From: Leidyana gryllorum EB-2025a
Taxonomy: Eukaryota; Protista; Apicomplexa
Length of the DNA: 64,000 bases
Direction of reading: 5' to 3'
Assembly (NCBI GenBank): GCA_048772705.1
Contig: JBLWGC010000092.1
Coordinates: 1 to 64,000 of the forward strand
Part shown: positions 1-58,710 of the stretch, piece by piece
Position numbering within the stretch: the first letter of the stretch is position 1
How the letters are laid out: the number at the start of each line of letters is the position of its first letter
Made by a program: the position numbers and the translations under genes
Notes under the pieces: model-generated
What the model saw: the letters and a program-made list of their open reading frames with translations, nothing else
What the model was told of the DNA's origin: nothing
Database searches by the model: none

Positions 1-593
1 TGCCCGATCAGAATGTAATCGTCAACGTCTTCTTTGGGTACCTTAGCGCCCTGAAGTGCTTTGCGGATGATAGCCAGGCCCGGCGCGATATATCGACTGA
101 AAATGTTGAATAGCTTAAACGGTTCCACCTCCACTGGAACACCATTGGCTTGACTCAAGTCAACTGGTAAGACGGCTGCAGAGCTTTGACTGCAATTGGC
201 AAGCCCCTGTTTGTAGAGGTGCTGCGGAGTGGATAAGAACACTCCTGCACTGATTCCGGCCCCACACTCGATCACCACCAAGTTCCGCGACCTTCTCATG
301 GGAGCCGGACAACTGGAGTGGTAGAGGAAAGCTGCAGCGTTCATGGCATCTAAGAAGTGGGCCCTTCCGAATCCCGCTTCTCCAGCGATAAAGCTCAAGA
401 GGTTCCGATCACACACATCTGTTCGTGACGGAATGCCTATGACCAAGTTTGGAGGTGCCGTGCCCTCGTGTGTGGACCGAGACGGCATGTCGTCTGGTGG
501 CAGACCTTTCATAATGCCTTTCAAACATCGCGATCCGAAGATAAGAAAGGACTGAAATCCTAAACCCACAACATTCCGGGGCAGAGGGAACAT
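1..593 (-). CDS. Divergent Hsp70-like protein (3' end runs off the window; absent from the ORF track)
   Basis: Manual translation from ATG 593: MFPLPRNVVGLGF...NLVIGIPSRTDVCDRNLLSFIAGEAGFGRAHFLDAMNAAAFLYH...LVVIECGAG...KALQGAKVPKEDVDDYILIG. Matches the Hsp70 pattern VITVPAYF..AG..AAA / ID.VILVG and the two neighbouring paralogs. Confidence 0.7.
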   Translation of the reverse strand, partial: MFPLPRNVVGLGFQSFLIFGSRCLKGIMKGLPPDDMPSRSTHEGTAPPNLVIGIPSRTDVCDRNLLSFIAGEAGFGRAHFLDAMNAAAFLYHSSCPAPMRRSRNLVVIECGAGISAGVFLSTPQHLYKQGLANCSQSSAAVLPVDLSQANGVPVEVEPFKLFNIFSRYIAPGLAIIRKALQGAKVPKEDVDDYILIG

Positions 594-721
594 TGTGTCC
601 TTGCTTCTTTGCAACATCTTTTCTCTCACGCATTCAATCACTCCACTACCCTCCCTTTTCCAGGAGATTAGCACATATGCCAACTGTGTGTTACGGACGT
701 ACGCGATACTAAGGTATCGAA

Positions 722-2155
722 TCACTCAGTACGAGATATGTTTGGTTCATGCGGGCATCCCGGCAGGCCTTTAGTAACTTCAGCGGCACATAACTCCTCA
801 TTCCAGGGTTTCCAGGACTGTAATGAGCTCACGGGGCACACTAGACTTAGAATGAACTTTTCGTCATGTTCTCTAGTCACTTGCACAGTCAGTAGGCCGC
901 TCAGATCGACACTGAACGAGATGTTCAAGCGGGTTTGGTAATGACAATGCGTCACCAATAGCGAGCCCAGGCAAATGTCGCTTCCGGCGGGTCCACTCCC
1001 ATGTTCCATCAGCGTGATGACGTGAGAAGCTCCCCGGAGCGGTGGAGTTTGCGTCGTCACTCGTTCACAAGGAAGAGAAGTTCCGGATTGAACTAAGGTA
1101 ATGGGTGGGCCGTCGTCAATTTGTGCGCATAAAGGATGCGGCAGAGTATCTGCGAGACCGCGACTCTCATAGCTGAGTGAACCACCTGCATCTATTGTCG
1201 TTCCAGCAGAGGCCGCTGCACGGGCCAAACATTCGGGGCCGCAACACAGGTGCTCAATGGGTGGCTTGTCATTGCCGAAGTAGCTCGCAATTAGATTCCT
1301 GATGGTTGGCAGTTTAGCACATTCTCCGACAAGAATAACATCAGCGATCTCCTTTCGATCGACCTTCGCTTCTGCCAGAGCCGCATCGATGGTCTGAATA
1401 CACTCGCAGAAGAAATCTAAGCAATATTCTTCGACCTCCTCCTTTGCAAAGGTCATGCGGACTGCTGGCCCCCACTCGATGGTCACACTGTCCCGTGACT
1501 TGAAAGATTCTTTAACGGTTACAGCCCACTCTTCCAAAGGAGGTGGCCGTGGTGGTCGGGCTAGACCAGTGTCCCGATACTTATCCTGGACCAGCGCTTG
1601 GATTCCGTAATCGATCGGCATAGCGTTACCCCGCGAGTTCACATGGGATAGCTGTTCCAACCAGAGGCTCTTGAACTCACAAACAATAGCAGCACATCCC
1701 GCTGCGTCACACTCAAGAACTACAAAGTGCGCCTTCTCTCGTACGGGGACAATGTCGTACCACAAGAAGGCAGAAGCGGCGAGCGAGGTGAGCAAGTGTA
1801 TATTTGTTAAACCAGCGGCAACTGCCAAGCGGTATATAATACCTCTGATGTTATAGTCCGTAAAAGTAGGGATAGCAATAACGGTTTGAGGCACCGTCAG
1901 AAGGAAAAAAGCCTCAGCCGTCACACGATAGCGCCAGAACATACACAAAATCTTCCCCAGACCGAGTTCATCGGCCTCCAAATCCACATACAGATCACGA
2001 GGAAATAATCTCTTCAAGTCATCCTTGTTCAAGTTGACAGTCGGATCTCCAGCACAGAGGGAAAAGCTTCGACTATCTCGATAGACCACACCACGAACCT
2101 CTCTTCCCACTACACTCAGTCCCAGGACCCCATTTATGGAGTCAAAATCCATCAT
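722..2155 (-). CDS. Divergent Hsp70-like protein (NBD plus partial SBD-beta), intronless
   Basis: VIAIPTFTD..AAGLTNIHLL..AASA, ALAEAKVDRKEIADVILVGE, LVQSGTSLP, ISFSVDLSGLLTV. First ATG at 2155. Confidence 0.8.
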   Translation of the reverse strand: MMDFDSINGVLGLSVVGREVRGVVYRDSRSFSLCAGDPTVNLNKDDLKRLFPRDLYVDLEADELGLGKILCMFWRYRVTAEAFFLLTVPQTVIAIPTFTDYNIRGIIYRLAVAAGLTNIHLLTSLAASAFLWYDIVPVREKAHFVVLECDAAGCAAIVCEFKSLWLEQLSHVNSRGNAMPIDYGIQALVQDKYRDTGLARPPRPPPLEEWAVTVKESFKSRDSVTIEWGPAVRMTFAKEEVEEYCLDFFCECIQTIDAALAEAKVDRKEIADVILVGECAKLPTIRNLIASYFGNDKPPIEHLCCGPECLARAAASAGTTIDAGGSLSYESRGLADTLPHPLCAQIDDGPPITLVQSGTSLPCERVTTQTPPLRGASHVITLMEHGSGPAGSDICLGSLLVTHCHYQTRLNISFSVDLSGLLTVQVTREHDEKFILSLVCPVSSLQSWKPWNEELCAAEVTKGLPGCPHEPNISRTE

Positions 2156-2331
2156 CGCGGCACCTTCTCCCACACGGTCCACTTGCTATTTCGAATACTT
2201 TGTGGAGTTTTCCCGACAATGACAATCCCGAGCGCATATCTATTGGACGTGTGAGCCGACTGTGGGCTGCTTCGTCTACCTCCAATATATTTGGAACGTC
2301 AGTGGTGGAGCAAGGGGCCTTTCCGTAACCT

Positions 2332-3906
2332 CTATGATCTCTCATCAGAGGACGCCATGTCGCAAGAATCATCTCCTGAATGAACAGTGGTAGGAGGCGT
2401 ATTTCTCAAGAAAATTGGTGGCGGTGGGGGCTGTGGGCTCTCTGGGATCTCTGAGGGTGTCATCAAACGTTTCCTCCACTCCTCCGGAGCTCGATTCCTG
2501 GCACTAGTTCGCCATGCTGGGATCGATAGGCATTGACATGTCAAAACTTGCCGAAAGAACGGATCGCGCACTTTAGATACAGTCACCGTTAGTACACCGC
2601 TCTCGCTCGCCCCAATGACAATGTTGAAGAGCTCAGCGGGGTGACATTTCTTAAAGCCAACGACTCCCAGTTCAACATCTGCTCCATTAACACCACTCCC
2701 GTGCTCAAAGAAGATCAATCGGTGTATACCATCTTCGGCAGCAGGGATTGTCCACACCATCTTGCGGACGCAGGGCATTCGCGTCCCCGCGGCAATCAAC
2801 TCGGAGATCTTTCCACACGCAAACCTAACACCAATCGGAAAGGGGAGTAAATCCGTTTGAAGGTGCCAGCGACGCCGGCGCAAGCCCTGTTCCTCGTAAC
2901 CTCGTGCCACAATGGACGCAGCTCTAGCCAAGTAAGTCATACAATCACTGGCCGTCGTGAAGGGTTTTGCTTCGCCAAAGTAAGCCGATATTCGGTCGCG
3001 CACAACCAGCAGCTGGCCGCATCTCCCGATTGTCACAATCTCTTGGATATCGCTCTTCTGCAATCCGGACGACTTCACTGCCGAATCCACCGCCTTCATG
3101 CATCGCGCAAAGTATTTTGAACAGTAATATTCCCACTCTGCCGCGTTCAACGTCATTTCGTCCCTGATTGGTTTGATCTCGTATCTTGCCGTATACGCAG
3201 TACGCAGCTGATACATCATTTCATAAGCAAGCTGGAGGAAGCACGGACGTAGCATCCCCGCGGAAACCGACCTACAAGTGTATTGTGCCTTCTTTTCCCG
3301 CACGGCCTGGGCCTCCGCCAACTTCGCGTCAAACTTCATCTCACAGACTGCCGCTAGAAGCTGGTCAATTGAGACCGACAAGCCGCTCCGAGTATTCGCA
3401 AACGACAACAACTCAAGACCGGCACTGGTGACTCTGTAGACAGCTGCAGCTGATCCCACATAGTCACACTCGAGTATAAGAACTTGTGTCGGGCTCGAAC
3501 AAGACTTCCATCGGAAGTTGGCCTCTGCCGCCATCGTGGTGAGAAAGTGAATGGAGCTGAAACCAGCAGCCGTAAGAGCGTATCGAAGCAAATGACGAGT
3601 GTGGTAGTCGGTAAAGACTGGAATCGTTACAACGGCATTGCAGACGTGTCGCTGAGCTGTCTGCTCTGCTGCGAGTCGCATACGCTGTAGTGATCTGATA
3701 CACAATTTGATTTCCGGAGAATCCATTGCCTCTAGAGTCGTATGACGGTTGATAGCAAAGGTTTGCTTATAGAGCTGCTGGAACACTCCGAAGTCCAACG
3801 ACTCATCGTCTCGATAATCCACCAATGCTCGGTAAATTTCATCCTGATAGAGTGCGACGTACACCTGTTTGCCACAAATACCAACCCCGAACGTAATCTC
3901 CGACAT
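2332..3906 (-). CDS. Divergent Hsp70-like protein, intronless
   Basis: NAVVTIPVFTD..AAGFSSIHFL, AVKSSGLQKSDIQEIVTIG, TDLLPFPIGV, LIAAGTRMP, SESGVLTV. First ATG at 3906. Confidence 0.8.
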   Translation of the reverse strand: MSEITFGVGICGKQVYVALYQDEIYRALVDYRDDESLDFGVFQQLYKQTFAINRHTTLEAMDSPEIKLCIRSLQRMRLAAEQTAQRHVCNAVVTIPVFTDYHTRHLLRYALTAAGFSSIHFLTTMAAEANFRWKSCSSPTQVLILECDYVGSAAAVYRVTSAGLELLSFANTRSGLSVSIDQLLAAVCEMKFDAKLAEAQAVREKKAQYTCRSVSAGMLRPCFLQLAYEMMYQLRTAYTARYEIKPIRDEMTLNAAEWEYYCSKYFARCMKAVDSAVKSSGLQKSDIQEIVTIGRCGQLLVVRDRISAYFGEAKPFTTASDCMTYLARAASIVARGYEEQGLRRRRWHLQTDLLPFPIGVRFACGKISELIAAGTRMPCVRKMVWTIPAAEDGIHRLIFFEHGSGVNGADVELGVVGFKKCHPAELFNIVIGASESGVLTVTVSKVRDPFFRQVLTCQCLSIPAWRTSARNRAPEEWRKRLMTPSEIPESPQPPPPPIFLRNTPPTTVHSGDDSCDMASSDERS

Positions 3907-4232
3907 GTCCAAATGGGAACTTTGACAGGATAGTTGACATCGAGACCACTCGGTTTTCCAGAAATGCAGCCAGCAGTACTGGATAGCATCGTCGTCCTAC
4001 GTAAGGGTGTAGCGGGCACTGAGCCATCGTTAAACTTCAGCTAGTCGACATCAGCGATAACAGACGTGTTGCGGATGCGTTGGCTTGTCATGGCCGTATG
4101 AAGGGTCGGATTGCCCATCTTTGTTGGCTATGGTAGTGAGTGACAAGGGCGTGCCCAAACATGTGCGTAGCATGTAGACAAACGGTGACATCAAGTTTTA
4201 GTAACGAATTTTGGGTGGCAGATCCGAAAAGA

Positions 4233-6325
4233 ATGTCAGCGGCGAGGACGGGGGAACGACAATGTCAGGCCGACAGAATTCATTCTATACAATGGTATAT
4301 ATGGGACCAGGTTCTGCAGTACTTGACGGTATCTGACTTGGTCATGGTTGCGCGGGCCAGCAAAACGTTGGAGGCTTTCTTAACCGAGAAACTGGCCTCA
4401 CGTTATGTGCGAATAAGCGTAGAAGACGTGCTGATGTATCGACCAGATAAGCAGTCGTGGTGGAATGAATGGTTGGCTCGCTCCAGTAAAGTAATGAGAG
4501 TGTTGGTTATTGACGACCGATCGAAGAAATGTCCGGCGCTGAACTGCATATTCAGTCAGTTCTTCAACGACCACGATTTTCCACATTTAAGTGAATGTGT
4601 AGTATGTTTACGTCGTCTGAGCAATGAACTCACTCGTAAGAGTCTGTGCTTCCCTGAATTGGAATGGCTTCAATTAATGGGAGATTACAGTCAATTCCAA
4701 GTTGACATTGAAGCACCGAAATTGAGATCACTAGTAGCTTCATCAGAGTGGTTGGGATCGAATCTCGGGAAGCTATCTATTCCGGATGACGCGACTGTCG
4801 TAGAGCTCGGACTAAATTACCGCAGACCTCACAACAGCGAACGAGTGGACTATATTATCGGACCTCGTTTACTGCAGGACCGTCTGGACTGGATTTACCG
4901 GTTGAGACGGGATCCAAGGTCGTCGTTGTCGTCCAAGTCGTCGGTTCGCCCCGTCCTTTTCCGCTATGAGGTCCGAGACTTGATTTCTGACCTCGATTGG
5001 GAGGATCTGGAGGAGATAAGTGACTGGTGGCCCAACACGGAGAGGTGAGCTGTCCTTTGTGTGTGTGCGTGTGTGCGAGCGAGGGTGGGCTGCCCGTCCC
5101 ATTTCTTTGGTGCGATGTGCTCCACGGCCAGTGTGATTCTGTTTTTAGGTACCGCGAGCTGTTGCAGAGGTTTGTTAGTCGTCTGCGAGACTATATGGCG
5201 AGGAACATTCCTCCGCCAGTGTATCGAGCTCTGGGAAACCGGCGCGAGTTTCGGTATGTTGAGAGCGGCAATCTGAAACGTCGCATAACTGCCCCTGCAT
5301 GGGAACGGCTGTGTCGTACGCGCGATTTTGACGGACTGCCACTGTGGGTCGAGGCTGTCCCTCTATGCGACTTTGCCGACAACCCTCATGGACCTGACGG
5401 TACCAATTTGTCAATGTCGGTTAGTAGTTCAACCAGTGCAGTTGAACTGCGCAAAGTGAAGAAGGAGTGGGTGTTGGTCCCTCGTTTACCACATCCGTGG
5501 GTCAAGCGGAACATAAAGCGTTTGGAGCTCCACGACGGATTCGTCTATGAGTGTTTCCATACTCATGTTTTGGGCGACAGCCCGAGACCCCCTCCATATC
5601 TGCCTGATTCGTGGGTGGTGGTGTGGGAGCGTCAGACCTGTTCGGCGACGGTTGACAATGACTGTTTGGTGGTTGGACACACTTTGATGGACAGCGCCCG
5701 ATATCGCGAGGCATTACAATATCTGCGAGTCAAATATGTCATTGTCACAAAGACGCCCGACACAGCTCTGGCTTTGTTCTGGTCTTATTTGGCGTTGTAT
5801 GCCATATGGAGGTCAGGGGGAGACGTCGTCCGTATGGTTTTCCGGGCCATAGGCTACTTTAATTGGCCGTGGTCTGAGGTTATCTACGAGATGGTCTCGG
5901 GCCGTTTTACAGAATCCCTTTTCACGACTTTGTTGGAGACAGTGGGTCTGGACCACCTTCAGACCGAGTTGCTCGAGTGCGCAATGAGTAATTATCCTTA
6001 TCTACCGCCCTGGCCTTATACGGCCAGGAACGCGGCGCCTCGTAAAGCCGCTGATGAGAGCTCGATGGCCGTCAGCCATCTGAGCGGCGATCAGAAATTC
6101 GCTTTCAATCAATGGTATCAAAGACTGATGGCTGTGTTGCCGATTGAAGCATATCCTGTGCGGCAGTGCAGATACCCTATCCAATTCGGTCGGATGCGTG
6201 ACACCTCTCAGTGGTTCGACACTAAGCTACGAACAGGAGCGTATGATGAGTTACGTGATTGGAATGTGCCGTTCACTCTGCCTGTTGGTACCGTCACACC
6301 TCCCGCTCATCATCTGTGCGAATAA
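4233..6325 (+). CDS. F-box / LRR-like protein, 2 exons (4233-5044, 5149-6325)
   Basis: F-box-like IQWYIWDQVLQYLTVSDLVMVARASKTL; LRR-like FPHLSE, FPELEWL, APKLRSL. The intron GTGAGC(5045)...TTTTTAG(5148) joins ORFs 4140-5048 and 5027-6325 exactly in frame. Confidence 0.65.
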
Positions 6326-6385
6326 AATATTATCAGTAGCTAGCCAACAAGAACAACAGACTTTTTTCCCCCACAAAACAAACCA

Positions 6386-7759
6386 ATGGGCACTTCTGTC
6401 CGTCTCCTGTCTCCTCGGCAACACTCCACGACCACAAGTCACTGGGCGTTGTTCTCGGTTCTTTTCGCCCAACAGCCTGCGTTCCCTTCCGAGAATGCGT
6501 TGGCTCTGTATGGGTCGACTTCCCGCTATCGGGACAAATACCGTCCAGAAACGACTAACATCGGGACGATGCAGGACCAACGGATGGGGGGCACTTTTCA
6601 CTGGAAGTGGTATAAGGTGTCGGGGCAGCTGCGCAAACTCGGGGTCAAACACGTTGGGTGCGAATGGCTGGACCGTGGGGGTAGCATGCCCGCCCATCGG
6701 GTGACCTTTATCGTCTGCGATAAAGGAGTCGATCCGAGAAGGATCCGCGATGAGAATATCGTGGCTGAGGTGCAAAAGGATGTGCTTTCGAGAAAGAATG
6801 CGCAGGATCCAAAAGTCATTGCGGAGCGACGAATTGCGCACGTCGTCAGGGGACTCTCCTCATCGGCTGGCAACCCTCACTTCAGATGGCAGATGGAGCT
6901 GTGGTGTCAATATGGCGGGGTATCTTTGACTGAGGCCGAGCTCAAGACTCTCCGGTATCAGAAACTGATACACAATCTGGCGCGGATTATCCATCGGGAG
7001 TATGACCCGTTTGTGAATGATCCGTGCTGTAAGAGAGCGCAGTCACTTGTGAAGAAGCTCAAGAAGACCTTTTCTAAGATACCATCGCGCGTCGGAAGGC
7101 CCGCCGACTCGGAGAAGGCGTTGGATTCCATCTTGGGTTTCATCTCCGACCACTTCAGGTGCAACAGCGCAGGCAAGCTGAGACTCTTAGTCCCGCCTGG
7201 GGAGAAGACAGAAGTGTCAGTGGGTATGAAAGAGATGATTTGGAAGAATCCCCAGACTTACGGTTATGACATCAACAGCTGGAGCGACGAATTACACAAA
7301 CCGGACTCCCTTGGCGACACTCGCTGGGACATTGTGCGGGAGAAGGTTTTTGGGTCTCAGAAATACGCACCCGCAGTGGACTGGTCTCACCACCCCAATT
7401 GGCCGTGTACACTCCTCGAGCTCACTGAGCGACTATTCTCTGTATTTTGGTCAAAGCTCAGAAAACGAAGGCTGTGGCGAGTGGTGCGACGACACAACTC
7501 TGTCGCCCATCCGTTCTGTTTCCAACCTATACTGGAAGACGACAGTCGGTTGCAGCACTTCTTTGACCAATCGAATGCGACTCAGGTCGCTGACTCCACG
7601 TCCCAACCTTCTTCGTCTTCTTCCACTCAGAGAAGAGTATCGCTTCCATTGCCAGCGGCGGCGCCTAGGAGAGTGCGTGCATATAGTGAGAGCGTCACAT
7701 CTCTGAGTGCCAGAAAAGCGGCTGCCGGATCTCGGCCTGTGTATGTGTCTGAACAGTGA
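6386..7759 (+). CDS. Hypothetical protein, tandem family member 1
   Basis: 457-aa intronless ORF sharing many motifs with the next two ORFs. Confidence 0.85.
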   Translation: MGTSVRLLSPRQHSTTTSHWALFSVLFAQQPAFPSENALALYGSTSRYRDKYRPETTNIGTMQDQRMGGTFHWKWYKVSGQLRKLGVKHVGCEWLDRGGSMPAHRVTFIVCDKGVDPRRIRDENIVAEVQKDVLSRKNAQDPKVIAERRIAHVVRGLSSSAGNPHFRWQMELWCQYGGVSLTEAELKTLRYQKLIHNLARIIHREYDPFVNDPCCKRAQSLVKKLKKTFSKIPSRVGRPADSEKALDSILGFISDHFRCNSAGKLRLLVPPGEKTEVSVGMKEMIWKNPQTYGYDINSWSDELHKPDSLGDTRWDIVREKVFGSQKYAPAVDWSHHPNWPCTLLELTERLFSVFWSKLRKRRLWRVVRRHNSVAHPFCFQPILEDDSRLQHFFDQSNATQVADSTSQPSSSSSTQRRVSLPLPAAAPRRVRAYSESVTSLSARKAAAGSRPVYVSEQ

Positions 7760-7865
7760 GACTCGCGAGAGAGAATGCGACAAGTCGGTGCGGCGGAGGA
7801 GGTGTCCGCGAAAGACATTGTTTATCAATTTTACTCGTCGGTCGAGACACTTTTTTTCCGCCACA

Positions 7866-9146
7866 ATGTGCACAGCTGTCCGTTATCAACCTGAACAGCG
7901 TTCCTCCACAACGAGCCACCACTCAGCTCTGCTGCTTCCGGCTCTCGTCGCTCAGCCCGCCACCGTTGCGCAGCCGTTGGCTCTGTTTGGGTCGAGCGCG
8001 CAGGATCGGGACAAATACCGTCCGCAAACGACCAATTGGGGTGAGAGGGAGTTGCCAAACGGGGGAGGCACTCACTACTGGAGGTGGTTTGAAGTTCCAG
8101 AGGAGTTGGCGGAAATGGGGGTCAAACACGTGGGATCAGAGTGGCTCTATTTCGGAGAGGAACTCGGGTATCAAGTGACCTTCGTCGTTGGTGATAAGGG
8201 GTTCAACCCCAAATCAATACCGACCGAGAAGGTCTCAGAGGTTTTGGAACGACGGATTACCTCAACGGCTGAAGATAAGGACCGTAAGATGAGAAAGGAA
8301 CGAAAAGTGGCCCACGTCATTCGGCCACTGTCCTCTTCTCTCAAGAATCGCTGGTTCAGATGGCAGATGGAGACTTGGTTCAGACATGGCAAAAATCCTT
8401 TCGCTCTCGACTCGGACGATACCCACGCTGTTCGTTACCAAAAGTTGGTACACAATCTCGCGAAAATCGTACACAACGAATTTGACCCCTGGGTGGACAA
8501 CCCATGTTGTGAGGAAGCCCGTCCACTCTTTAAGCGGATCAAACAAGTTTTCTCTGGGATATCGTCACACGTTGGAAGCGCGTCCGATACCAATAGGGCG
8601 TGCCGCGCGATTAAGGAATTCGCGCCCGGCGGGCCAGAGCTGCTCGACAAGAACGGGACACCAATCCCAGGCACTGAAGCCTCGCAACAGGAGACGTCTT
8701 TCATTCAAGTAGATCAACCCGACTTTGGAGTTGACGTTGACCTTCGCAGCAATGAATTGGACAAACCAGAATCGCTCCCCACTTCTCCATGGGAGCTCGT
8801 TCAGGACCACTTGGGCTTCCGGAAAGGCGTTCCAAAAGTCGAGTGGAAACACGACGGTCAGCCCTGTATGCTTATCCCCACCACTCAGCGACTTTTCTCT
8901 GTCTTCCGATCTAAGCTCAGACAGCGTCTCAAGTGGCAGCTGGCAACCCAACCGTCGCGTGTCGCCCATCCCTTCTATCTGCCGCTGCCCGCACCCACAA
9001 CGACAAGCCGGGCCGAATCGACCTCAGTTTCTCAAGGGGGGTCGGGTCACAGTAGTTCGCTTGAGGGACCCACAACAGAATCCCAGCCCACTATCGAAGG
9101 CTCCCGCGTGATCCCCTCTGCCGACGTCCCGTCAACATCACTCTGA
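7866..9146 (+). CDS. Hypothetical protein, tandem family member 2
   Basis: ATG 7866 (MCTAVR..STTSH aligns with MGTSVR..TTTSH of member 1); shared motifs. Confidence 0.85.
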   Translation: MCTAVRYQPEQRSSTTSHHSALLLPALVAQPATVAQPLALFGSSAQDRDKYRPQTTNWGERELPNGGGTHYWRWFEVPEELAEMGVKHVGSEWLYFGEELGYQVTFVVGDKGFNPKSIPTEKVSEVLERRITSTAEDKDRKMRKERKVAHVIRPLSSSLKNRWFRWQMETWFRHGKNPFALDSDDTHAVRYQKLVHNLAKIVHNEFDPWVDNPCCEEARPLFKRIKQVFSGISSHVGSASDTNRACRAIKEFAPGGPELLDKNGTPIPGTEASQQETSFIQVDQPDFGVDVDLRSNELDKPESLPTSPWELVQDHLGFRKGVPKVEWKHDGQPCMLIPTTQRLFSVFRSKLRQRLKWQLATQPSRVAHPFYLPLPAPTTTSRAESTSVSQGGSGHSSSLEGPTTESQPTIEGSRVIPSADVPSTSL

Positions 9147-9196
9147 TGGGGGGGATGATTCAATGATAGTGTCCGCCCGCCCAAAAGTGTCTGTTG

Positions 9197-9222
9197 GGCT
9201 GGCTGGCTGGCTGGCTGGCTGG
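9197..9222. repeat. (GGCT)6 microsatellite
   Basis: Directly visible between family members 2 and 3. Confidence 0.9.
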
Positions 9223-9440
9223 GGTATGTCGGACGGATCGACCGCTGAAGCCACCTTAGTTAGATTTCTTTCAGTTGTGGCTGACGAATGCAAATGTCGG
9301 CATCATCGGCCGGAAAGAGCTCTTTGAAAAGTATCTGTGGCCAAATATCGTTTCATCAATGGTTAATTTTGATGCAATGCCAGGAAGATCGGTCCCGGTC
9401 GCAATTAGTCGGTCAGTCTTTTTTTTTCTCAAATTGAGTG

Positions 9441-10946
9441 ATGCCTAACTCGGTGTGGTTTCGTTCTGATACCCGTCTACAGACTTGCCAAAGGCGGTAC
9501 TGGGAGTTCCTCTCTTTCTTGGTGGCTCAGAATCCGACGAGTCATGCGTTAGCTCTTTACGGGTCGAGTGCGCGGTATAGGAATGTATACTTTCCGCATA
9601 CGGCACAGGATGAGGGGTCAGAGCCAATTAGGGTGCAGAAGGGCGACGGTCACGGGTGGTACTTTCACAACTGGAAGTGGTACGAGGTTCCAGATGAGCT
9701 ATCGAAGTTGGGGGTGGAAAACTTGGGCCGTGAATGGCTCTTACCCAAACGGGAGAGTCGTGTGCCAAAATATCAAATAGTATTTGTCGTCTGCAAGGAT
9801 GGCGTCGACGTGGACAAACTGCCCATCGACCTCATTGAGAGATCCATAAAGGCAGACGTCGTCTCAGATAACGGTGAGTGCGGCGAGTCAACGAACAGAA
9901 GAAGGGTGCCGGCTCGGGGAGTCGTGAAAGCTCAGATCATCAAGTCGCTCTCTTCCTCTAACAAACAACCGTTCTTCCGATGGCAGTTAGAGACGTGGTG
10001 TCAACACCGCGAGAAGCCCTTTCCCTCAGCTCAACGGGGAGTCATCCGATATCAGAAACTGATACACAATCTCGCCCGGATAGTGCATAGAGAGTTCGAC
10101 CCCATGGCCGCCAAGCCGTGCTGTGAAGCGGTGAAACCTCTTTTGAAACAGCTAAAGGAAACCTTCGCTGCGATTCCCGCCCACGTTCCGCGACCCAATG
10201 ACACTAAGAGAGCACTACTCATCATCCTGAATTTTATTCGCCAACGCTTCACCGAGACTGAGGGAGAGTTAAGTCTTCTTCTCCCATCTCCCCAGCCAAA
10301 GAAAGCGAATTGGCTCTCAAAACTGAAGGTCAGAGTGAACGGAGGCGATTCCCCCGACTCAGCAGCGAATCAGCAGAGTGCAGCTGACACCTCTCTGCCG
10401 GAAAAGTCGTCTGTGGAGCCTCCGAGTATATGCTCCCCTTTCCTTTCCAGGCGGATGAAGAGTGCGGAAATTGCCGAGATAGACTTTAAGGACTGGAGCA
10501 ACGAAGCCAACAAACCTCCAGACTCGCCTTCAAACGCGCCGAAGGGGCGCTTCAAGGATATTTTTGGCCCCCAATATGGTCCCCCTTTGGTCGACTGGTC
10601 TCACAGAAAGGGAATGTGCCTGGTGGGGTGCGCCGTAGAGAGACTGTTCTCCCGGTTCTTCTCGAAGCTCAGGAAGCGGAGACAGTGGATACTGCCAGAC
10701 CCCGACCATCCCAACGAGGTGGCGCATCCCTTCTCCCTCGAGCATCCGACACCCCTACGACACACATCAAATCCCGACCCTCGCATAGAAGCCCTCCTCG
10801 AAGACATTCAACAGACGACAACAGCGGCCTCAGGGTCCTTCGCAGGGAGACCAATGTCGACACCGTTAGTTAGAAAGGTTTACTCAATTGGTCATTCCAC
10901 TCCACGAAGCGCCAGAATGTCTTTCCGTTCAATGACACGTGGGTAA
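9441..10946 (+). CDS. Hypothetical protein, tandem family member 3
   Basis: ~500-aa intronless ORF with LALYGSS, WKWYEVP, FRWQLETW, RYQKLIHNLARIVH, VDWSH, VAHPF motifs. Confidence 0.85.
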   Translation: MPNSVWFRSDTRLQTCQRRYWEFLSFLVAQNPTSHALALYGSSARYRNVYFPHTAQDEGSEPIRVQKGDGHGWYFHNWKWYEVPDELSKLGVENLGREWLLPKRESRVPKYQIVFVVCKDGVDVDKLPIDLIERSIKADVVSDNGECGESTNRRRVPARGVVKAQIIKSLSSSNKQPFFRWQLETWCQHREKPFPSAQRGVIRYQKLIHNLARIVHREFDPMAAKPCCEAVKPLLKQLKETFAAIPAHVPRPNDTKRALLIILNFIRQRFTETEGELSLLLPSPQPKKANWLSKLKVRVNGGDSPDSAANQQSAADTSLPEKSSVEPPSICSPFLSRRMKSAEIAEIDFKDWSNEANKPPDSPSNAPKGRFKDIFGPQYGPPLVDWSHRKGMCLVGCAVERLFSRFFSKLRKRRQWILPDPDHPNEVAHPFSLEHPTPLRHTSNPDPRIEALLEDIQQTTTAASGSFAGRPMSTPLVRKVYSIGHSTPRSARMSFRSMTRG

Positions 10947-11085
10947 TGAATGAATGTTTGGTGGGGCCATTGCCACAATCACAGCCGAAATGTGTCGTTT
11001 CTCTCGCCTCACAAATGCCAGCAACCGAATGTAGACTCATCTCATGACACCACTTGGTCGTTCACAGATTAGCCAAACTTTTGGG

Positions 11086-12986
11086 ATGGATTTCCTCAAG
11101 TCGGCCTTGGCACACGGACAGAATGCGCTCGCCACCATTGACCGACACATGGAGGAGTCCAAACGGGCCCAGGATGACCGAGAAGAAGCTGAGGCTCTCG
11201 GAGACGGCAACGCAATAATAGATGAAGACCCGCAATCGGAGCCCCATCAACCCGAGCCCCACTCCCAAGCTGAACCGGAAGACTCGTGCGCCGGTTTGGT
11301 CGGAAATGAGGCGTCGGCGGCAGCAGTGACGGTCGATGAAGAGACAGAGAAGGAACAAATTGTTGTGGAGGAGCCGGAGAGCGCCCCCGTTTCAACCAGT
11401 GAGATGTCGGGGACTCGAAGTTTGTGGGGAGGTTTGTTTGGAGCCGGTGGTGGTGGAAGTTTCGCGAGTCAGCCCGTGGGAGGCGGTGTGGCTCCCGACA
11501 AGTTGCAGGCAGAAGTTGAGAAATTGCGGGTTAGAACGGTGTGACCCCAACTCAAACCTATGTTCAGCGCAGAGTTAAGGATCTCGAAAGAGAGAATGAC
11601 GAGTTGTATCGCGAGGGCATCAAGTTTTCTCAGAACGCCGGGCAGCAGGAGTCTAAGGTGTCGATGCTGAATCACAAGCTGAACGTGAGTTTCTTTGATG
11701 TGCAGTCGTTTCAAATAGATCTCGCAGGAAGCTCAACGAGCGCTGGAGGCTCGCGAAGAGAAAGTCGAGGAGCTCACCGAGACCAATAGAGTACTGAACG
11801 ATATGTTGGGCCAACTGACCGACGCCAACAGCGCCAAGAAAGCCTCGAACAAGAGGGTCACTGATCTGGAGGCCCAACTTTGTACATTGGAGGGCGAGAA
11901 ACAGGTGCTGATCAATGAGAAGGCCTTCCTGGAAGCCGCTTATCAGTGAGTTTTCGGCCGGGTACAGACGATTAAGAATGATTCAATGCAGAGACGCGCA
12001 ACATCAGGCCACAGAGGAAAGGATGGCCTTCGAACAGGAGACGGCCGAGAAACTGGCCGAGAAGCAGAAGGAAATCGATCATTTACGGATGGAAGTTCAG
12101 GTAACCATCGGTGTCGCTATCCGTTTCATTCTGTTTCACACAGAAACTCATTCGCAGTCAGAGTCGATGGCAGGAGAAGATGGTGGCTATGGAGAATGAG
12201 TTGCAGTTGGCCAAACAGGAGGCACAGAATGTCAAGTTGACGGAGCAGTCGAGTGATGGGGACTCCTTCTTCAACAAAATACAGTCTGCCGAGCTCGAAA
12301 GCAGAAATTGGCAATTGCAGAAAGAGGTGGACGGACTAAAGTTGGAGATCGCCCGTTTTCGGGAAGACAGTCGGTCGCAAATGTCGGAGACGGAGCAATT
12401 GCACAAAGAAGAGTGTTCAAAGTTAAGTGAGCAAATCCGACATTTGGAGCATCAGCTGGGCCTGGAGACGGAGAGAGGCCGACGAGAGCTCGAGGAGGAA
12501 CGGCGAGCGAAAGAATCGATCATCTCGAGTTTGACCACACACCTAAAGGAGACCGAACGACGATTGAGATTGCAGCAATTGCAAAGTAATCTACTGACAT
12601 CCGCGAGCAACCCGGCAGCCGGGTCGAATCCCAGCTTTCGAATAACATCACCCTCTGTCGAGCCGGCGTCGGAGACTTCTAACTCTCCAGCTGAAGTGAG
12701 TCGGTCAAAGCTGCCCGCCGCCGAGGAGGCTCGAGCACTCCATCGGCAGACCCCGTCGTCCTTCTCCGCATCACACAACCCGCAAGTGGACCCGTTTGAG
12801 GATTTCCGACCCCTCCCACCAAGGCAACCTCATCTAACGTCCGGTGACGAGAGTAAACATATGATTAGACTGAAAGCGGATTTGGCTGCTGTAAGAGCGG
12901 AGAGGTCCATGTTCGAACAAGAGTGTCTGCGTCTCGCTGCCCGACTGGAGGAGCTAAAGACAACTACTTCAACGAGTGTACAATAG
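11086..12986 (+). CDS. Multi-exon coiled-coil (golgin-like) protein
   Basis: Successive E/K/Q-rich heptad ORFs (11044-11544, 11541-, 11915-, 12111-12986) linked by short GT-AG introns. Confidence 0.6.
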
Positions 12987-13892: not shown

Positions 13893-16800
13893 TCACCCCG
13901 GTAACATGGCTGATCGCTAGATCGACCAGTGTTCGTGGGCTCAGAAACTTCTGCTACTAACTTCTTCCAGTTGAAGGTATAGTTTCTTAACCTCCGGGTC
14001 GTCACAAGATTGACAACGATCCCGCAATAACCGTGATATGGGTAGTGCCTTCATGTGATTGACCAGATTGGCTCGGAAGTGGGTCACAAGGTCCCTGCAG
14101 CACAGACAAATAAATCAGATAGGGGGGGGGCGAAGTACTCACATGACGAGGTGAAGTGTGTTCTTCAGGTTCCGGGTATCAGCCTTAGGTTCAGACAAGA
14201 TTATTGTGGCCAACTCCAACATTGTGTGCACTTCAGCCTCGAGCATTTGCTGTGGGGTATGCTCATTGTGGTTATACTGTTGCGGGATGGCGGTGTTTGG
14301 CGTACTGACGTCACGGATAGAGTAGATCACCGTGACGTACGACGTCAAAGTAGCGTCCCGCAAGTCGCTTATGTACTTCACCCACTCATCGGAATCCTGC
14401 CAGAAACAGACAGTAATGCGCAAGTCGGGCGATATTTAGGCATCAACGCAACAGATCAACAGAGTTCCGTTACTTTGTCGCCCCTTATTCTGTTGCAGAA
14501 TAGGACTTACCGCTGGTCCCTGGTTGAGACGTGCCCCCGCAGCATGGTGGAGAATTTCCATGAAATCTTTGAGGTATGGTAAGAAGGCTTGGGGAGCCAT
14601 GACTGCAATGTCTCCAAGTGCAGTGATGGCTTTGGGCTTGAGGAAGATGGGGGTATTGGGGTCGCGGAGAACTGTGAATAGTTCCGGCGCAAAGTTGCCC
14701 ACGTAGTGTGCGAACTGCTCGCCCATCGAGGTGGCCAGGTTCCCAATAACATCAATCGCGATGGCCACGAACTGCACACAAACACAAAATGAAGTGTTCG
14801 AACGTGTGTGCGGGCAAGGACTTACGTCAGAGTCATCCTTAGTTTGCAGTACGGCGTGGATGAGATGGTAGAAGTTGGACATGTAACGATCGAAACTATG
14901 TTGCATTGCTGCGAGGGCGGGGAAAGTGTGTCCAGAGGACGTCGCGCGATCTGCTGCTGCTTACCGGAGATGAGCTTATTCAGGGCCAGAAGGGCTTCCT
15001 CAGCAGCCGTGTTCCATTGAGTTTCGCCGAGGTTGACCGCACGGGACTGAGACTGCACTGTCCGTTGGAAGATAGAGTACAGTCTGTCAGCGTCAGGCAT
15101 AACGGCTTTATCCAAGCGACCAATAAGCGCGTTGAGACATCCACACATCGGTCCCTGGACCTCAGCTATCTCTTCCGATGGGTTCTGAGCGAGGGTGAGT
15201 TCCATCCAATCCATGAGTTGTGTCATGAGAATGCGCATATTTTGTTCCTGGGCGGCTCCGTCGCCGACTTGCTTGACGAGCATATAGAGTGCGTGGTGAG
15301 CGGCATTTCGGAGTCGGTGTTCGTTGGCATCGGGACGTTTAGCCACACCGACGAGGGCGTCTGCCAATGTGATGAAATAGGGATCAATGCGAGAAGTGCC
15401 CGTCTCTCTGGTGGTTGTACCAGTGTTGATTCCGGCACAAATTTCGTACAAGGCGAAGCAGATGTTGGCCGCGACTCGAGGCTGATCGGGGAGAGAGTTG
15501 ACCAGCAGCGAGATGAGTCCGGGGTTCTGTTCCGGCTCAATGTATGTGCTGATGGCCGAATAGTGGTACCGAGCCAAACGACCAATGGTCCAGGCTGTGG
15601 TGTCTCGAACGGCAGGCGACTCATCGGTCAAGCGCTTGCAGAGGGGCTCGAACGACCGCTTCAGCAGATCGCTGAAACCCGTTGGAGACGGGCCCTCCAG
15701 GATGGAACCATAGACGAGGACAGCAGCTTCGCGTCGACTCCATTCCATTGCACTAAAGTTGGCCTCGATAAAGGTCAAGGCGCTCCCGAGGATTTCATCC
15801 TTCAAAATCTGAGCACAAAGCCCTATGGACGTCCCGGCTGCCATAGCTACAGTCCACTCATCGTCCTGATCCTCGTACTCTTGTTTGGTGGTTGCCTCAT
15901 ACAGAGCGGGCATTAGGGAGTCTTGGAACCGTTTGATGTACTGCATTGAATTTCGATGAGTGTCGCCTTCCAATATGAGTATTTCTTCATCACACAAAGT
16001 GGACCAGAATTCAATCGCAGATAGCGCCGTGGGAGAGGTGTCAGAGCCTGCCGCAATACGAGACAGCGAGATGTCGTGTAATTCTGGCATGGCCGGCGCC
16101 AACTCCGAGTAAAACTCGGAAGCGAGTTGCAGCCAAACTTCCCAAGCTGCGAGCTCCACATCTTCTCGACCCGCATTCAAACACCCTCCCAGAACACCAT
16201 ACAGTGCATTCCGATCCGGCTCATTTGCAACGTATTGTTCAGCGAAAAACACTCCGTAATAGAACGCTTTCAGCGCCGCAAGACGCACGTCCAAGTCGGG
16301 ATCCACCAAACCAACCGATAAACACTTCAGCAAGACATCTTTCATTTGAGGCTCCAGGATTTCCCGACCAATCTCTTCCCGCAGACTCTGGACATCCTCA
16401 CAGAAGTAACCGATGACCTGATATGCTCCAATACGGCGGTGCGCCGGACCGCCTGGCTGACTCAACAGCTCCAATGTCGGCACAAGAGTTGGCCAGTTGC
16501 CACATGGAATCTCTACCCGAGCAATCTTCGAAATCGCCTGACTCGCCGAGTTCCGTGCAGCCAAACATGGACTGTCTAGCGTCGATATCAACGCCATCTT
16601 TATTTCATTCGCCACCTGGGGCGGAACCTCCAGCCACTTCTGCCGCTTTAGGCAGTCAATCTTCATGTCCTGCACCCATCAACAACATTTACCCAAAAAC
16701 CTCCCATTCAGACACACACGATCGAAGAACACTCAGACACACACCATCATAGAACACTCAGACACACACCACCACTTAACACTCATGACACCAGTGACGG

Positions 16801-42108: not shown

Positions 42109-45100
42109 ATGCAGGACTTCGATGCAGAGGAAGACGAGAGGTATTGGAACCGCCTGACTGAACAGCACGAGAGAGCGGATGTGGCAATACCCCAGACAAC
42201 GGGTAATGTATTTGAGGATGTCTTGGAGGCTCTGAGAGGGTAAGCTTGAGTGGGTTTGAAGACTGCTTTTTATCTGTTCACCGCAGGACTGACGCGAGGC
42301 GTCCCCAGAGTCTGGGGCGCCCCCCTCAAATGACGGTACTGCGACGAAGTCGTCGGGGTCGTTTACGCAAGGAGGTCAGAGACATATATCTCCACGAGGA
42401 GTTCCCTTGTGGGGTTGTGGACTGTGGCGTCTGTCAAGAAATGGAAGAGGATAGTGAAGGAGCGAAGCTTTCTGCTCAGTCTATCGTTCTGATAGACTCT
42501 CCGGTGGCGATTCAGGAAGTTGACTTCCTGTGGGACGACCCGTCGGTGAACAACGTGGTGATTCTTCAGTCTGTTTTGGACGAAGTCCGAGAGAAGTCCA
42601 GAAGGCGTAATTATCGACGGCTGTTACGGCTGTGTGGTTTTGAGGCTCCTGACGGCGTAGTTGCAGCCGGGAACACGAGACGTCAACGCCGTAAGGTTCT
42701 GGGAGACCAAGATGAGGTCCCTCCCAACCGTCGCTTCTACCTGTTTCCAAACACCGCGATGGTGGGGACTTTTGCGCCCCGTGAAGATTGGGAAACCGAG
42801 GATGCCTATTCCTGCCGTCTCGTGAAGCGGTCAGCTTTGTGGTACAATAGACACCGCAACTCGGACGGCGATGCCATGGACGAGATGAGCGCCTCTGCTG
42901 ATCCCAAGGTGGTGGTGCTGACCACCACTGAGAAGAGGAAACAAATGCTGATATGCAACGAGGAGGATCGAGTGACAGCAATGACTCTGTCAGAGTGGAT
43001 CAACAAGGCTCGCACTCAACACCCGACCGCAGGCGAAAAGCTCGTTGGCAATTATGCGGATGACGATATGGCGGAGGGGTTGGGAGGTGTGAGGGAGGCG
43101 GACCCTGAAGAGCGGGAGCGATCGATGCGTGCGTTGGATCTTCTTCGAAAGGCTGCTGATGGTATTGACGTGGTGCTGCGAGACGATTTACGTAAAGCTC
43201 AAGCGGTATATCCGCCTCATTTGTCTCCCACCACACTGGCGGCTCGTGTGCGAGCAGGTCGCGCGTTCCAAGGAAGCCTCAAGACCGCCCCCACTACCTG
43301 CTGGAAGGCCACAGTCACTGTGCCCCATGGTGACGAGAGTATTGACATTAAGATCGCGGGCAGTGTGAACATCAATCGCGCTGTGGACGGAGATATAGTC
43401 GTGGTGGAAATGTTGGACGATCAAGATATCATTGCCAGGAAAGCCGCCGCGGCTGAAGAAGCTCGACTGGATGGAGTGGACGAACTCGATTTGGAGGCGA
43501 GGAGACCGGTTACGGATATCCAACCCGATCGTCAACACTATATTGGCCGTGTGATTGGCATTGTCCAGCGTAACTGGCACACTTATTGTGGGAGCCTCTT
43601 GAAGGGAGTGGCCAGTGGGACTCAGCGTGGGGAGGATCGAAAGTTTGTCCCCGCCAGTCCGAAGATCCCTCCGTTCGTCATCCGCACCCACCAAGCCGCA
43701 GCTCTCGAGGGCCGACGATTGGTCGCTTGCATGGATTCGTGGGATCGATACAGTTTGTACGCCAGAGGGCATTGGATTGAAGACTTGGGTGTGGCCGGAG
43801 AGGATGCCACAGAAGCAAAAGTGATTCTGAGAGAGCACAATGTGATAACGCGAGAGTTCCCTCCCTCAGTGATGCGATGTTTGCCACCCCCGTCCTATCA
43901 AGTGTCCAATGAAGACATGAGCACCCGACTGGACATTCGTCTGAAAAAGTGTTTCTGTGACAATTGCCGTCTGCAGCGGAATGGCAAAGAGATTCCCGGG
44001 ACAAAGGACCCCAAACTGGAAGAGTTGGTGGGAACACCGTGTATTTTTTATGCGGACAAGTCGCGTAAGGACCGTCCGTTATTGAATTGGCTCGAGGAGG
44101 ACGTGGAACCGTACAAGGCTGCTGTTAAGCGTCGAAAGAAGAATCCCAAGTACGAAGAGTACGAGGATCCAGAGCTTCTGGGATCAACTGGTACAATCTG
44201 TTGTTCAATTGATCCCCCAACGTGTGTGGATATAGACGACTCTCTTTCAGTAAAGTTCCTGAAGAACGGCAATTATGAGATCGGAGTTCACATTGCTGAT
44301 GTGACTCACTATGTGAAGGCCGATACCGCCATTGATGTCGAAGCGGCTGAGAGATGTACAACAGTATATCTCGTCAACCAACGTACCGATATGTTGCCCA
44401 AGAGGTTAAGTGCTGATATATGTTCCCTGAAATCCGGGGTAGATCGGCTTAGTTTCAGCGTGTTCTGGGAGATGACTCCCAATGCTAAAATCAAGAACAC
44501 CCGCTTCCACAAGACGGTAATGCACGCTGTGGCAGCATTCAATTATCAACAAGCGCAAAACATCATTGATGACGGCCAGGACAATGGGCCGATGGCAGTG
44601 CGTCTGCGTGTGCTCAATGATTTGGCCAAGAAACTGCGTGCTCGCCGAATGGAAGCGGGCGCTGTGGAGCTGTCGGCGACGGAAGTCAAGTTCACAATGG
44701 ACGATAAGGGTCAACCGGTCGAAGTGGAACCGTATCCTGAACTTGAAACACATCACTTGGTTGAAGAGTTTATGCTTCTAGCCAATATGGCCGTTGCTGA
44801 GAAGATTTACCAGACTTTCCCGGACTGCGCTGTGCTCAGACGCCATCCTCCCCCCAAAGCCGACGGGCTCGCACTGTTGGCCAAGATTCTGGCTGAGAAA
44901 GGGTTCAACTTTAAGTACGGCACGAGTGCAGAGTTGGCTGATTCATTGACCAAAGCCACCCGGCCGGATGACCCCGAGTTCAACAGACAGCTGAGGGCCA
45001 TCACGGTTCAGTACATGAATCAAGCAGTGTACTTTTGCACCGGCGAGATCAAAGATCCCGAACAGATGCGTCACTACGCTCTCGCCAGCAACTTTTATAC

Positions 45101-45762
45101 ACACTTCACCTCTCCAATCAGACGGTACGCAGATGTCCTCGTGCATCGACTGCTGGCCGCGGCACTCGGAGTCGCCCCACTGTCGATCAGTATGGCGCAG
45201 ACGGCGAGGATCACCGATCTGTGTCAAAAGATGACGGAAAGACATCGGAACGCGCAATTTTGTGGGAGAGATTCTGCGAGCTTCTATGCCTACAAACTGT
45301 TTAGCAAGAAAGGGAACCTTGAGGTCCGTGGAGTTGTGACCCAAGTTCGAGCCAACGGGTGTTTGGTACACGTGCCTGAATGGGGAGTTGATGGACACGC
45401 CGTTGTAGATAGCTCTCAGTTTAAGTACGACCCCCAAGCGAGGGTATTGGAAAGCATTACTCGCCCCGGCGAGGTGATCAGCATGTTCGATCACGTCGCT
45501 GTCCAAGTGGAGACTTCCGATGAGGACTATAGGTAAGCGTTCCCTTCTTGGCGGGGGCGTCCATATCCACACCCACACTTTCAGGTATCGTGTGTCATAC
45601 GTCCTGATCAAGAAACTACCGCTGGCTGCCAAGCCCTCCCAACAGCATAGAAACGTCCCCACTAGCAGACCTTCATCAGAGAAGATGAGGTCCTCAGTCA
45701 AGAGGGCCTCTTCCAGTCAGTCCCGACAGAGCAACAAGGCGACTAAAAAATCGTCCAAGTAG
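42109..45762 (+). CDS. DIS3: Exosome catalytic subunit DIS3/RRP44, 3 exons
   Basis: CR3 motif CGVVDCGVC, PIN, NRAVDGD, SIDPPTCVDIDD, GVHIADV, VEEFMLLAN, YTHFTSPIRRYAD. Exon 1 from ATG 42109 to the GTAAG donor near 42240. Confidence 0.95.
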
Positions 45763-58400: not shown

Positions 58401-58710
58401 GAGGTACCTCCCCTTCCAGTGTAGAGGGGGGTATCGCTCCAACTGGTGGAGGTACCTCCCCTTCCATTGTGTAGGGGGGTATCGCCCCCACTGGTCGAAG
58501 AGCGTCAACTTCATGATGGGGTAGCTTTGCTGGCCGTTGTATCGGTTTCACGGGCCTCTCCGTGGGAGGAGGAGGAACATGCGAATTTATGATAGTGCGT
58601 GGAGGGACTCGATCGAGCTCTATCGTGGGTACGTACAGTGACGAAGGGGATTGGGCAGTAATATCATGGCTGTAGGTGCCGATGTCACAACACAAGTTTG
58701 GTTGCATCAT
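55437..58710 (-). CDS. Large proline-rich repeat protein with C-terminal BTB/POZ domain, multi-exon; 3' end approximate
   Basis: The 831-aa ORF splices (CCAG|GTAAG..TTGCAG) in frame to the exon SDCTVVCEKEIFPANRALLVARSRVFAEML..SPEVVRSLVDFVHTD (BTB). Confidence 0.7.
57200..57420 (-). repeat. Coding 33-bp tandem repeat (~6-7 copies, GTRDMPPPPPP)
   Basis: ggcatatcgcgggttccggggggaggtggtggc repeated nearly identically. Confidence 0.92.
58344..58492 (-). repeat. Coding 48-bp tandem repeat (~3 copies, PVGAIPPSTLEGEVPP)
   Basis: Visible in both DNA and protein. Confidence 0.9.

Follow-up and report, generated by a model that had tools for sequence, protein, structure and literature searches.

The region analysed comprises the first 64,000 nucleotides of contig JBLWGC010000092.1 (forward strand, assembly GCA_048772705.1) of the apicomplexan Leidyana gryllorum EB-2025a, hereafter the window, which carries at positions 6,386–10,946 a tandem triplet of paralogous genes, A, B and C. 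The locus as a whole is probably best explained as an old, constrained and lineage-restricted triplet that encodes soluble proteins of two modules, with a run of T upstream of each gene. Sequence, profile and fold searches all ended without a relative, which supports a preliminary description of this DNA in which the family had been called unrecognised.

Paralogue A is an open reading frame (ORF) at positions 6,386–7,759 of the plus strand, encoding 457 residues with an isoelectric point (pI) of 9.9. Paralogue B (plus strand, 7,866–9,146 from its ATG) encodes 426 residues with a pI of 7.7 and has the shortest linker of the three, and paralogue C (plus strand, 9,441–10,946 from its ATG) encodes 501 residues with a pI of 9.7 and is the most divergent copy, its linker carrying an additional insertion of approximately 45 residues. 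All three are intronless, and none has an internal stop codon or frameshift. The ORF of paralogue B extends upstream to a GTG at position 7,707, and both this GTG and an ATG at position 7,743 lie within gene A. Its start was placed at the ATG at 7,866 because the amino termini of A, B and C align from the methionine; the run of seven T that precedes this ATG by nine nucleotides, with counterparts upstream of A and C, is a further basis for the choice. In paralogue C, a GTG stands one codon ahead of the ATG. The spacer between B and C, at 294 nucleotides the longest of the array, contains a short (GGCT)n microsatellite at positions 9,199–9,222.

The three proteins are diverged paralogues, as had been proposed: pairwise BLASTP comparisons give 40.8% identity for A and B (E-value of 8e-94), 33.7% for A and C (E-value of 1e-76) and 34.7% for B and C (E-value of 1e-66). 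By these values, paralogue C diverged first, and the split between A and B came later. In a MAFFT alignment of the three sequences (A1), the other two paralogues are 39% and 36% identical to A, and 99 columns are invariant. Each of the ordered motif blocks listed in the preliminary description reappears in this alignment, as does its set of invariant histidine and cysteine residues (H196, H203, C214, C215, H335, C341 and H375 in the numbering of A). The variable serine-rich tail was likewise confirmed; beyond the V-A-H-P-F block, the tails comprise 56–80 residues, of which 14–23% are serine, and are unalignable between the paralogues.

Identity among the paralogues is highest at the second codon position (0.61), lower at the first (0.47–0.55) and lowest at the third (0.34–0.41). 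Synonymous sites are saturated, with a proportion of synonymous differences (pS) of 0.71–0.78 against a proportion of non-synonymous differences (pN) of 0.41–0.45. The ratio of non-synonymous to synonymous rates (dN/dS), a check that the preliminary description had suggested, is approximately 0.27–0.28 for the two pairs with a defined dS, an overestimate owing to the saturation, and is indicative of purifying selection. The GC content of the triplet (0.535–0.552) and that of its third codon positions (GC3; 0.596–0.619) equal those of the neighbouring importin-beta, RNB exoribonuclease and ankyrin genes. The codon-position pattern, the values of pS and pN and the host-like composition mark the ORFs as genuine genes, and saturated synonymous sites combined with a lower pN point to old duplications of which all three copies have been kept by purifying selection. 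The sequence evidence thus shows an old tandem triplet of three genuine and intact protein-coding genes under such selection.

Each paralogue has its own short upstream region containing a T-run on the plus strand. The run comprises six bases upstream of A (positions 6,362–6,367, 19 nucleotides before the ATG), seven upstream of B (7,851–7,857, 9 nucleotides before the ATG) and nine upstream of C (9,419–9,427, 14 nucleotides before the ATG). Runs of at least six T are rare in the window, with nine on the plus strand and seven on the minus strand. Three of the nine plus-strand runs precede the ATG codons of the triplet, and two of the seven on the minus strand lie 18–23 nucleotides upstream of the ORF starts at 58,710 and 42,082, so that 5 of the 16 runs, which are six to nine bases long, sit 9–23 nucleotides upstream of a start codon. 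The retention of a T-run upstream of all three genes despite saturated synonymous sites suggests that the element is functional. It may be a core promoter, an initiator or a signal of the 5′ untranslated region, possibly one general to this genome.

Searching of the 15.5-Mb assembly (237 contigs) recovered exactly three copies of the family, all at this locus, even at an E-value threshold of 10, which settles the number of genomic copies that the preliminary description had proposed to count. Within the window, a relaxed search detected no further related ORFs. No Pfam match was obtained with the whole proteins A, B and C at E-values of up to 1, and nothing significant with nine sub-domain pieces, three per paralogue, at E-values of up to 10; scans of the whole proteins against NCBIfam gave no significant match, and those against PHROGs nothing significant (best E-value of 0.069). 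The family profile matched no PDB sequence at E-values of up to 10. A word-index search of 5.8 billion protein clusters detected no relative, and 1.84 billion representative proteins, searched in full with the A1 profile using hmmsearch, gave 0 matches at E-values of up to 0.001. Exact-sequence look-up of A, B and C returned a blank from a protein collection that does not hold this genome's own proteins, as did an ESM Atlas feature search with paralogue A. No relatives were found among JGI metagenome contigs, whether with peptide patterns or with a degenerate DNA pattern that corresponds to the R-Y-Q-K-L-[IV]-H-N-L-A block, or among IMG/VR viral contigs. A profile built from the three copies and fold searches, both of which had been recommended as checks, thus yielded no confident match to a characterised family.

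The importin-beta ORF at positions 14,822–16,672 served as a control for these searches. Its best matches are two Gregarina sp. transcriptomes in EukProt (55–56% identity), followed by two Logan contigs (48–51%), Gregarina niphandrodes (42%) and Polyplicarium (38%). These matches identify the host as a eugregarine and demonstrate that the searched protein collection does contain gregarine data; they also indicate that, even in importin-beta with its conserved sequence, a great distance separates the host from its closest sampled relatives. In a published comparison, the overlap in orthogroups among gregarine genomes, or between them and those of other apicomplexans, is under approximately 20% (PMC9250747), and an orphan family is therefore to be expected here rather than exceptional. 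As far as public data go, the family appears to be restricted to this eugregarine lineage, with intact paralogues under selection and no outside homologue in a database that includes gregarines.

The architecture was modelled using AlphaFold2 in two runs, one with full-length paralogue A and the three-sequence alignment (mean predicted local distance difference test score (pLDDT) of 45.3 and predicted template modelling score (pTM) of 0.39), and one with a trimmed core of paralogue B and alignment A2 (mean pLDDT of 43.6 and pTM of 0.31). The two models, of different paralogues and constructs, place their strands and helices in the same order. In the numbering of A, the first element combines a short helix with a meander of four antiparallel strands (residues ~59–111); it is followed by a helix, a variable disordered stretch and, at the A-H-V-I block, a short strand. 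Helices are predicted at residues 164–176, 183–210, 216–229 and 239–256, and the C-terminal part comprises a disordered variable linker followed by a long helix (residues 342–360). On the basis of model and alignment, paralogue A would be divided into an N-domain (residues ~36–180), a helix bundle (residues 183–256 and 342–360), a variable linker (residues 271–325) and a serine-rich tail (residues 378–457). Alignments from the VIA structure searches cover model residues 178–379, and the C-terminal helix is therefore modelled as part of the bundle.

We infer from these low-confidence models that the three proteins are soluble and consist of two modules each. The first of these would be a small α/β N-domain built on the four-stranded antiparallel meander, to which the W-K-W-Y-x-V, G-V-K-H-V-G-x-E-W and V-T-F-V-V blocks contribute. 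The second would be an up-down four-helix bundle, in which three helices, from the R-Y-Q-K-L-I-H-N-L-A block on, are joined by a fourth, the distant, basic C-terminal helix R-L-F-S-V-F-x-S-K-L-R-K-R. The variable loop and the disordered serine-rich tail appear to be appended to these modules.

Fold searches were performed with the models of full-length A and trimmed-core B. Neither Foldseek against the PDB nor a search of BFVD gave a match at E-values of up to 0.001, an Atlas structure search gave template modelling scores by query of 0.24 or less, and VIA-wide searches with both models gave generic or insignificant matches only. No claim of novelty is made for the fold of the N-domain.

An ESM Atlas language-model search with residues 34–283 of paralogue C ranked three clusters of DOCK DHR-2 lobes B and C first, with scores of 0.83–0.87. 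In DHR-2, as in the model of the triplet, a β-domain comes before a four-helix bundle, and the family could on these grounds be an extremely diverged DOCK-type DHR-2 module, with the β-sheets of lobe B and the four-helix bundle of lobe C, that acts as a guanine nucleotide exchange factor or a pseudo-exchange factor. However, a score below 0.9 with 151 shared features is, according to the calibration of the tool, what chance hits typically reach. The profiles PF20421 (lobe C) and PF20422 (lobe B) had no match at E-values of up to 10 anywhere in the genome when it was searched in six frames together with the triplet locus; hmmscan of the whole proteins and of the separate domains gave no DOCK match; and no DOCK chain appeared among the best 50 VIA or Foldseek rows, for which the models used had a pLDDT of approximately 45. 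According to the literature, moreover, Apicomplexa have no Rho GTPases or exchange factors for them left at all (PMC5499878). The resemblance of the triplet to DHR-2 lies in the language-model ranking and in a predicted β-rich module that precedes a four-helix bundle. The DOCK reading, which we consider very improbable, was rejected on the sub-threshold score, the missing matches to the Pfam lobes and the reported loss of Rho in Apicomplexa.

A GIY-YIG/T5orf172-type nuclease domain, and hence a gene of a selfish element or of viral descent, was suggested by an hmmscan match of PF10544 to a helical segment of paralogue B only (13.9 bits, against a curated cut-off of 20 bits; E-value of 0.081). 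With nine queries, however, chance alone would produce approximately 0.7 such matches, and paralogues A and C give none. A hidden Markov model of 15 genuine T5orf172 domains, drawn from 151 Bacteroidota genomes, scores B at −0.7 bits, and hhalign of T5orf172 against A1 returned a probability of 0.5% and a P-value of 0.11, a value that 20 column-shuffled controls bracket (P-values of 0.065–0.71). Genuine members carry G-x-V-Y and K-I-G-x-T strands without counterpart in the triplet family, and a T5orf172 search of this genome found none. With profile and profile–profile comparisons at the level of shuffled controls, this assignment is scarcely credible and was rejected.

A mobile-element or viral gene was also rejected: the family has no dispersed copies, its GC content and GC3 are host-like and viral relatives are lacking. 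No terminal repeats flank the triplet, the only repeats being those between the coding regions of the paralogues. Viral or transposon matches had been raised as a check in the preliminary description; none was found by sequence or fold, and the absence of viral relatives extends over PHROGs, IMG/VR and, at E-values of up to 0.001, the folds of BFVD.

The invariant cysteine and histidine residues, together with basic helices, had earlier been taken to suggest a metal-binding enzyme or a nucleic-acid-binding fold. Among ungapped columns, tryptophan is invariant at 64% of its positions, cysteine at 45%, phenylalanine at 41% and histidine at 29%, compared with ~24% for all residues. With tryptophan, cysteine and phenylalanine in the lead and histidine near background, this is the pattern of an ordinary conserved hydrophobic core. 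No metalloenzyme, zinc-finger or nuclease family was matched, and comparison with metal-binding helical bundles (Dps/ferritin-like, DUF305 and CopM) revealed no above-background fold match with ligand residues in register. The earlier suggestion is accordingly unsupported by these tests. That H196, H203, E205 and D207 on the long helix form, together with the cysteine residues, the catalytic metal centre of a metal-dependent enzyme is in our estimation improbable. If the up-down topology is right, helix 1 would end (H203, E205 and D207) at the same side of the bundle at which helix 2 (C214 and C215) and helix 4 (C341, closely preceded by H335) start, and a structural metal site or clasp there would be geometrically plausible, as a possibility suggested by a low-confidence model.

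It is similarly doubtful, to a slightly lesser degree, that the paralogues are nucleic-acid-binding proteins, with a basic surface and a lysine- and arginine-rich C-terminal helix that bind RNA or DNA. The pI values of A and C and an invariant K-L-R-x-R within the predicted helix are consistent with such a role; the near-neutral pI of paralogue B speaks against it, the models pack the basic helix into the bundle as its fourth member instead of leaving it as an exposed arm, and no nucleic-acid-binding family was matched by sequence or fold.

In all three paralogues, a polar, net-basic and Ser/Thr-rich amino terminus of ~20 residues is followed by 7–9 hydrophobic residues (~21–30) that precede the first conserved block. 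The statement that the proteins lack a transmembrane segment was borne out, no 19-residue window in A, B or C exceeding a Kyte–Doolittle mean of 1.46, whereas the accompanying statement that they lack a signal peptide is not proven, given this hydrophobic stretch. The segment could be a recessed signal or transit peptide of secreted or organelle-targeted parasite-specific proteins, in which the invariant cysteine residues would take part in disulfides or in cofactor binding at the destination. Tandem, fast-evolving and lineage-specific families of apicomplexans are often secretory, and such a destination is compatible with a lineage-restricted family. However, the hydrophobic stretch is short (maximum 19-residue Kyte–Doolittle means of 0.65–1.46) and in paralogue C is interrupted by a glutamate, and three invariant cysteine residues, an odd number with two of them adjacent, do not suit a simple disulfide pattern. 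Secretion or organelle targeting, which we regard as unlikely, is nevertheless the main rival proposal for localisation.

Several points weigh against the old, constrained triplet of soluble two-module proteins as the account of this locus. Both models are poor by their confidence scores, which makes the domain picture and the clustering of cysteine and histidine residues tentative, and histidine is not conserved above background. The blank gregarine transcriptomes, being incomplete and very divergent, are weak evidence of absence. Finally, the short conserved hydrophobic stretch near the amino terminus may direct the proteins to secretion or to an organelle, and their function would then have to be seen differently.

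As a committed but tentative guess at the function, for which the odds are somewhat unfavourable, the product would be a scaffold or binding protein without catalytic activity that serves parasite-specific biology. The cluster of residues at the end of the bundle (H203, C214, C215, C341 and perhaps H335) would stabilise the bundle in its closed form, possibly by means of a structural zinc ion; the serine-rich tail would be a regulatory and probably phosphorylated appendage. A more far-reaching version, in which the β-meander and a helix bundle that a Cys/His metal site holds together constitute a novel two-domain fold found only in eugregarines, with a parasite-specific role such as one inside an organelle or at the interface with the host, to which the conserved N-terminal segment would lead it, seems to us rather unlikely.

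Gregarines, which parasitise the gut of insects or other invertebrates, are the least-known large branch of the Apicomplexa, and most of their genes are without a counterpart elsewhere. Since an orphan family is expected in such a genome, the triplet alters no current view; it is a clean and well-constrained orphan example, with three ancient intact copies and sharply defined motifs. Should the organism become tractable, the proteins would lend themselves well to structure determination or localisation, and the family profile is ready-made for the screening of new gregarine genomes.

The surroundings of the triplet are occupied by genes of other kinds. The contig begins on the minus strand with a region (positions 1–3,912) in which the ORFs at 722–2,182 and 2,332–3,912 show weak partial Hsp70 matches in Pfam (E-values of 6e-11 and 2e-13), the contig starting inside a third. 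Directly upstream of the triplet, a plus-strand gene at positions 4,140–6,325 ends 61 nucleotides before gene A, and its two ORFs have no Pfam match at E-values of up to 1. Downstream, at positions 11,044–12,986 of the plus strand, are two ORFs likewise without a Pfam match, one acidic (166 residues) and one rich in glutamate, leucine and arginine (291 residues), which may be exons of a single gene. Farther along the plus strand, positions 42,246–45,536 encode a Dis3/RNase II-type exoribonuclease (RNB domain, E-value of 7e-101), the best bacterial match of which is a Flavobacteriaceae metagenome-assembled genome (37% identity).

Among known structures, the predicted helix bundle most resembles generic up-down four-helix bundles, the best matches being the N-terminal bundle of branched-chain ketoacid dehydrogenase kinase (PDB entry 3tz0), Rogdi (PDB entry 5xqi) and Dps (PDB entry 1n1q). 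As a gene family, the triplet resembles the orphan tandem families of apicomplexan and especially gregarine genomes, which likewise form small intronless arrays without homologues beyond their lineage and combine a conserved core with variable low-complexity regions. It differs from the orphan tandem families compared in that no sign of secretion or of antigen-like variation has been demonstrated. In contrast to arrays that expand and decay rapidly, it consists of three old copies that have remained strongly constrained, with a saturated dS and a dN/dS of approximately 0.3 or less.

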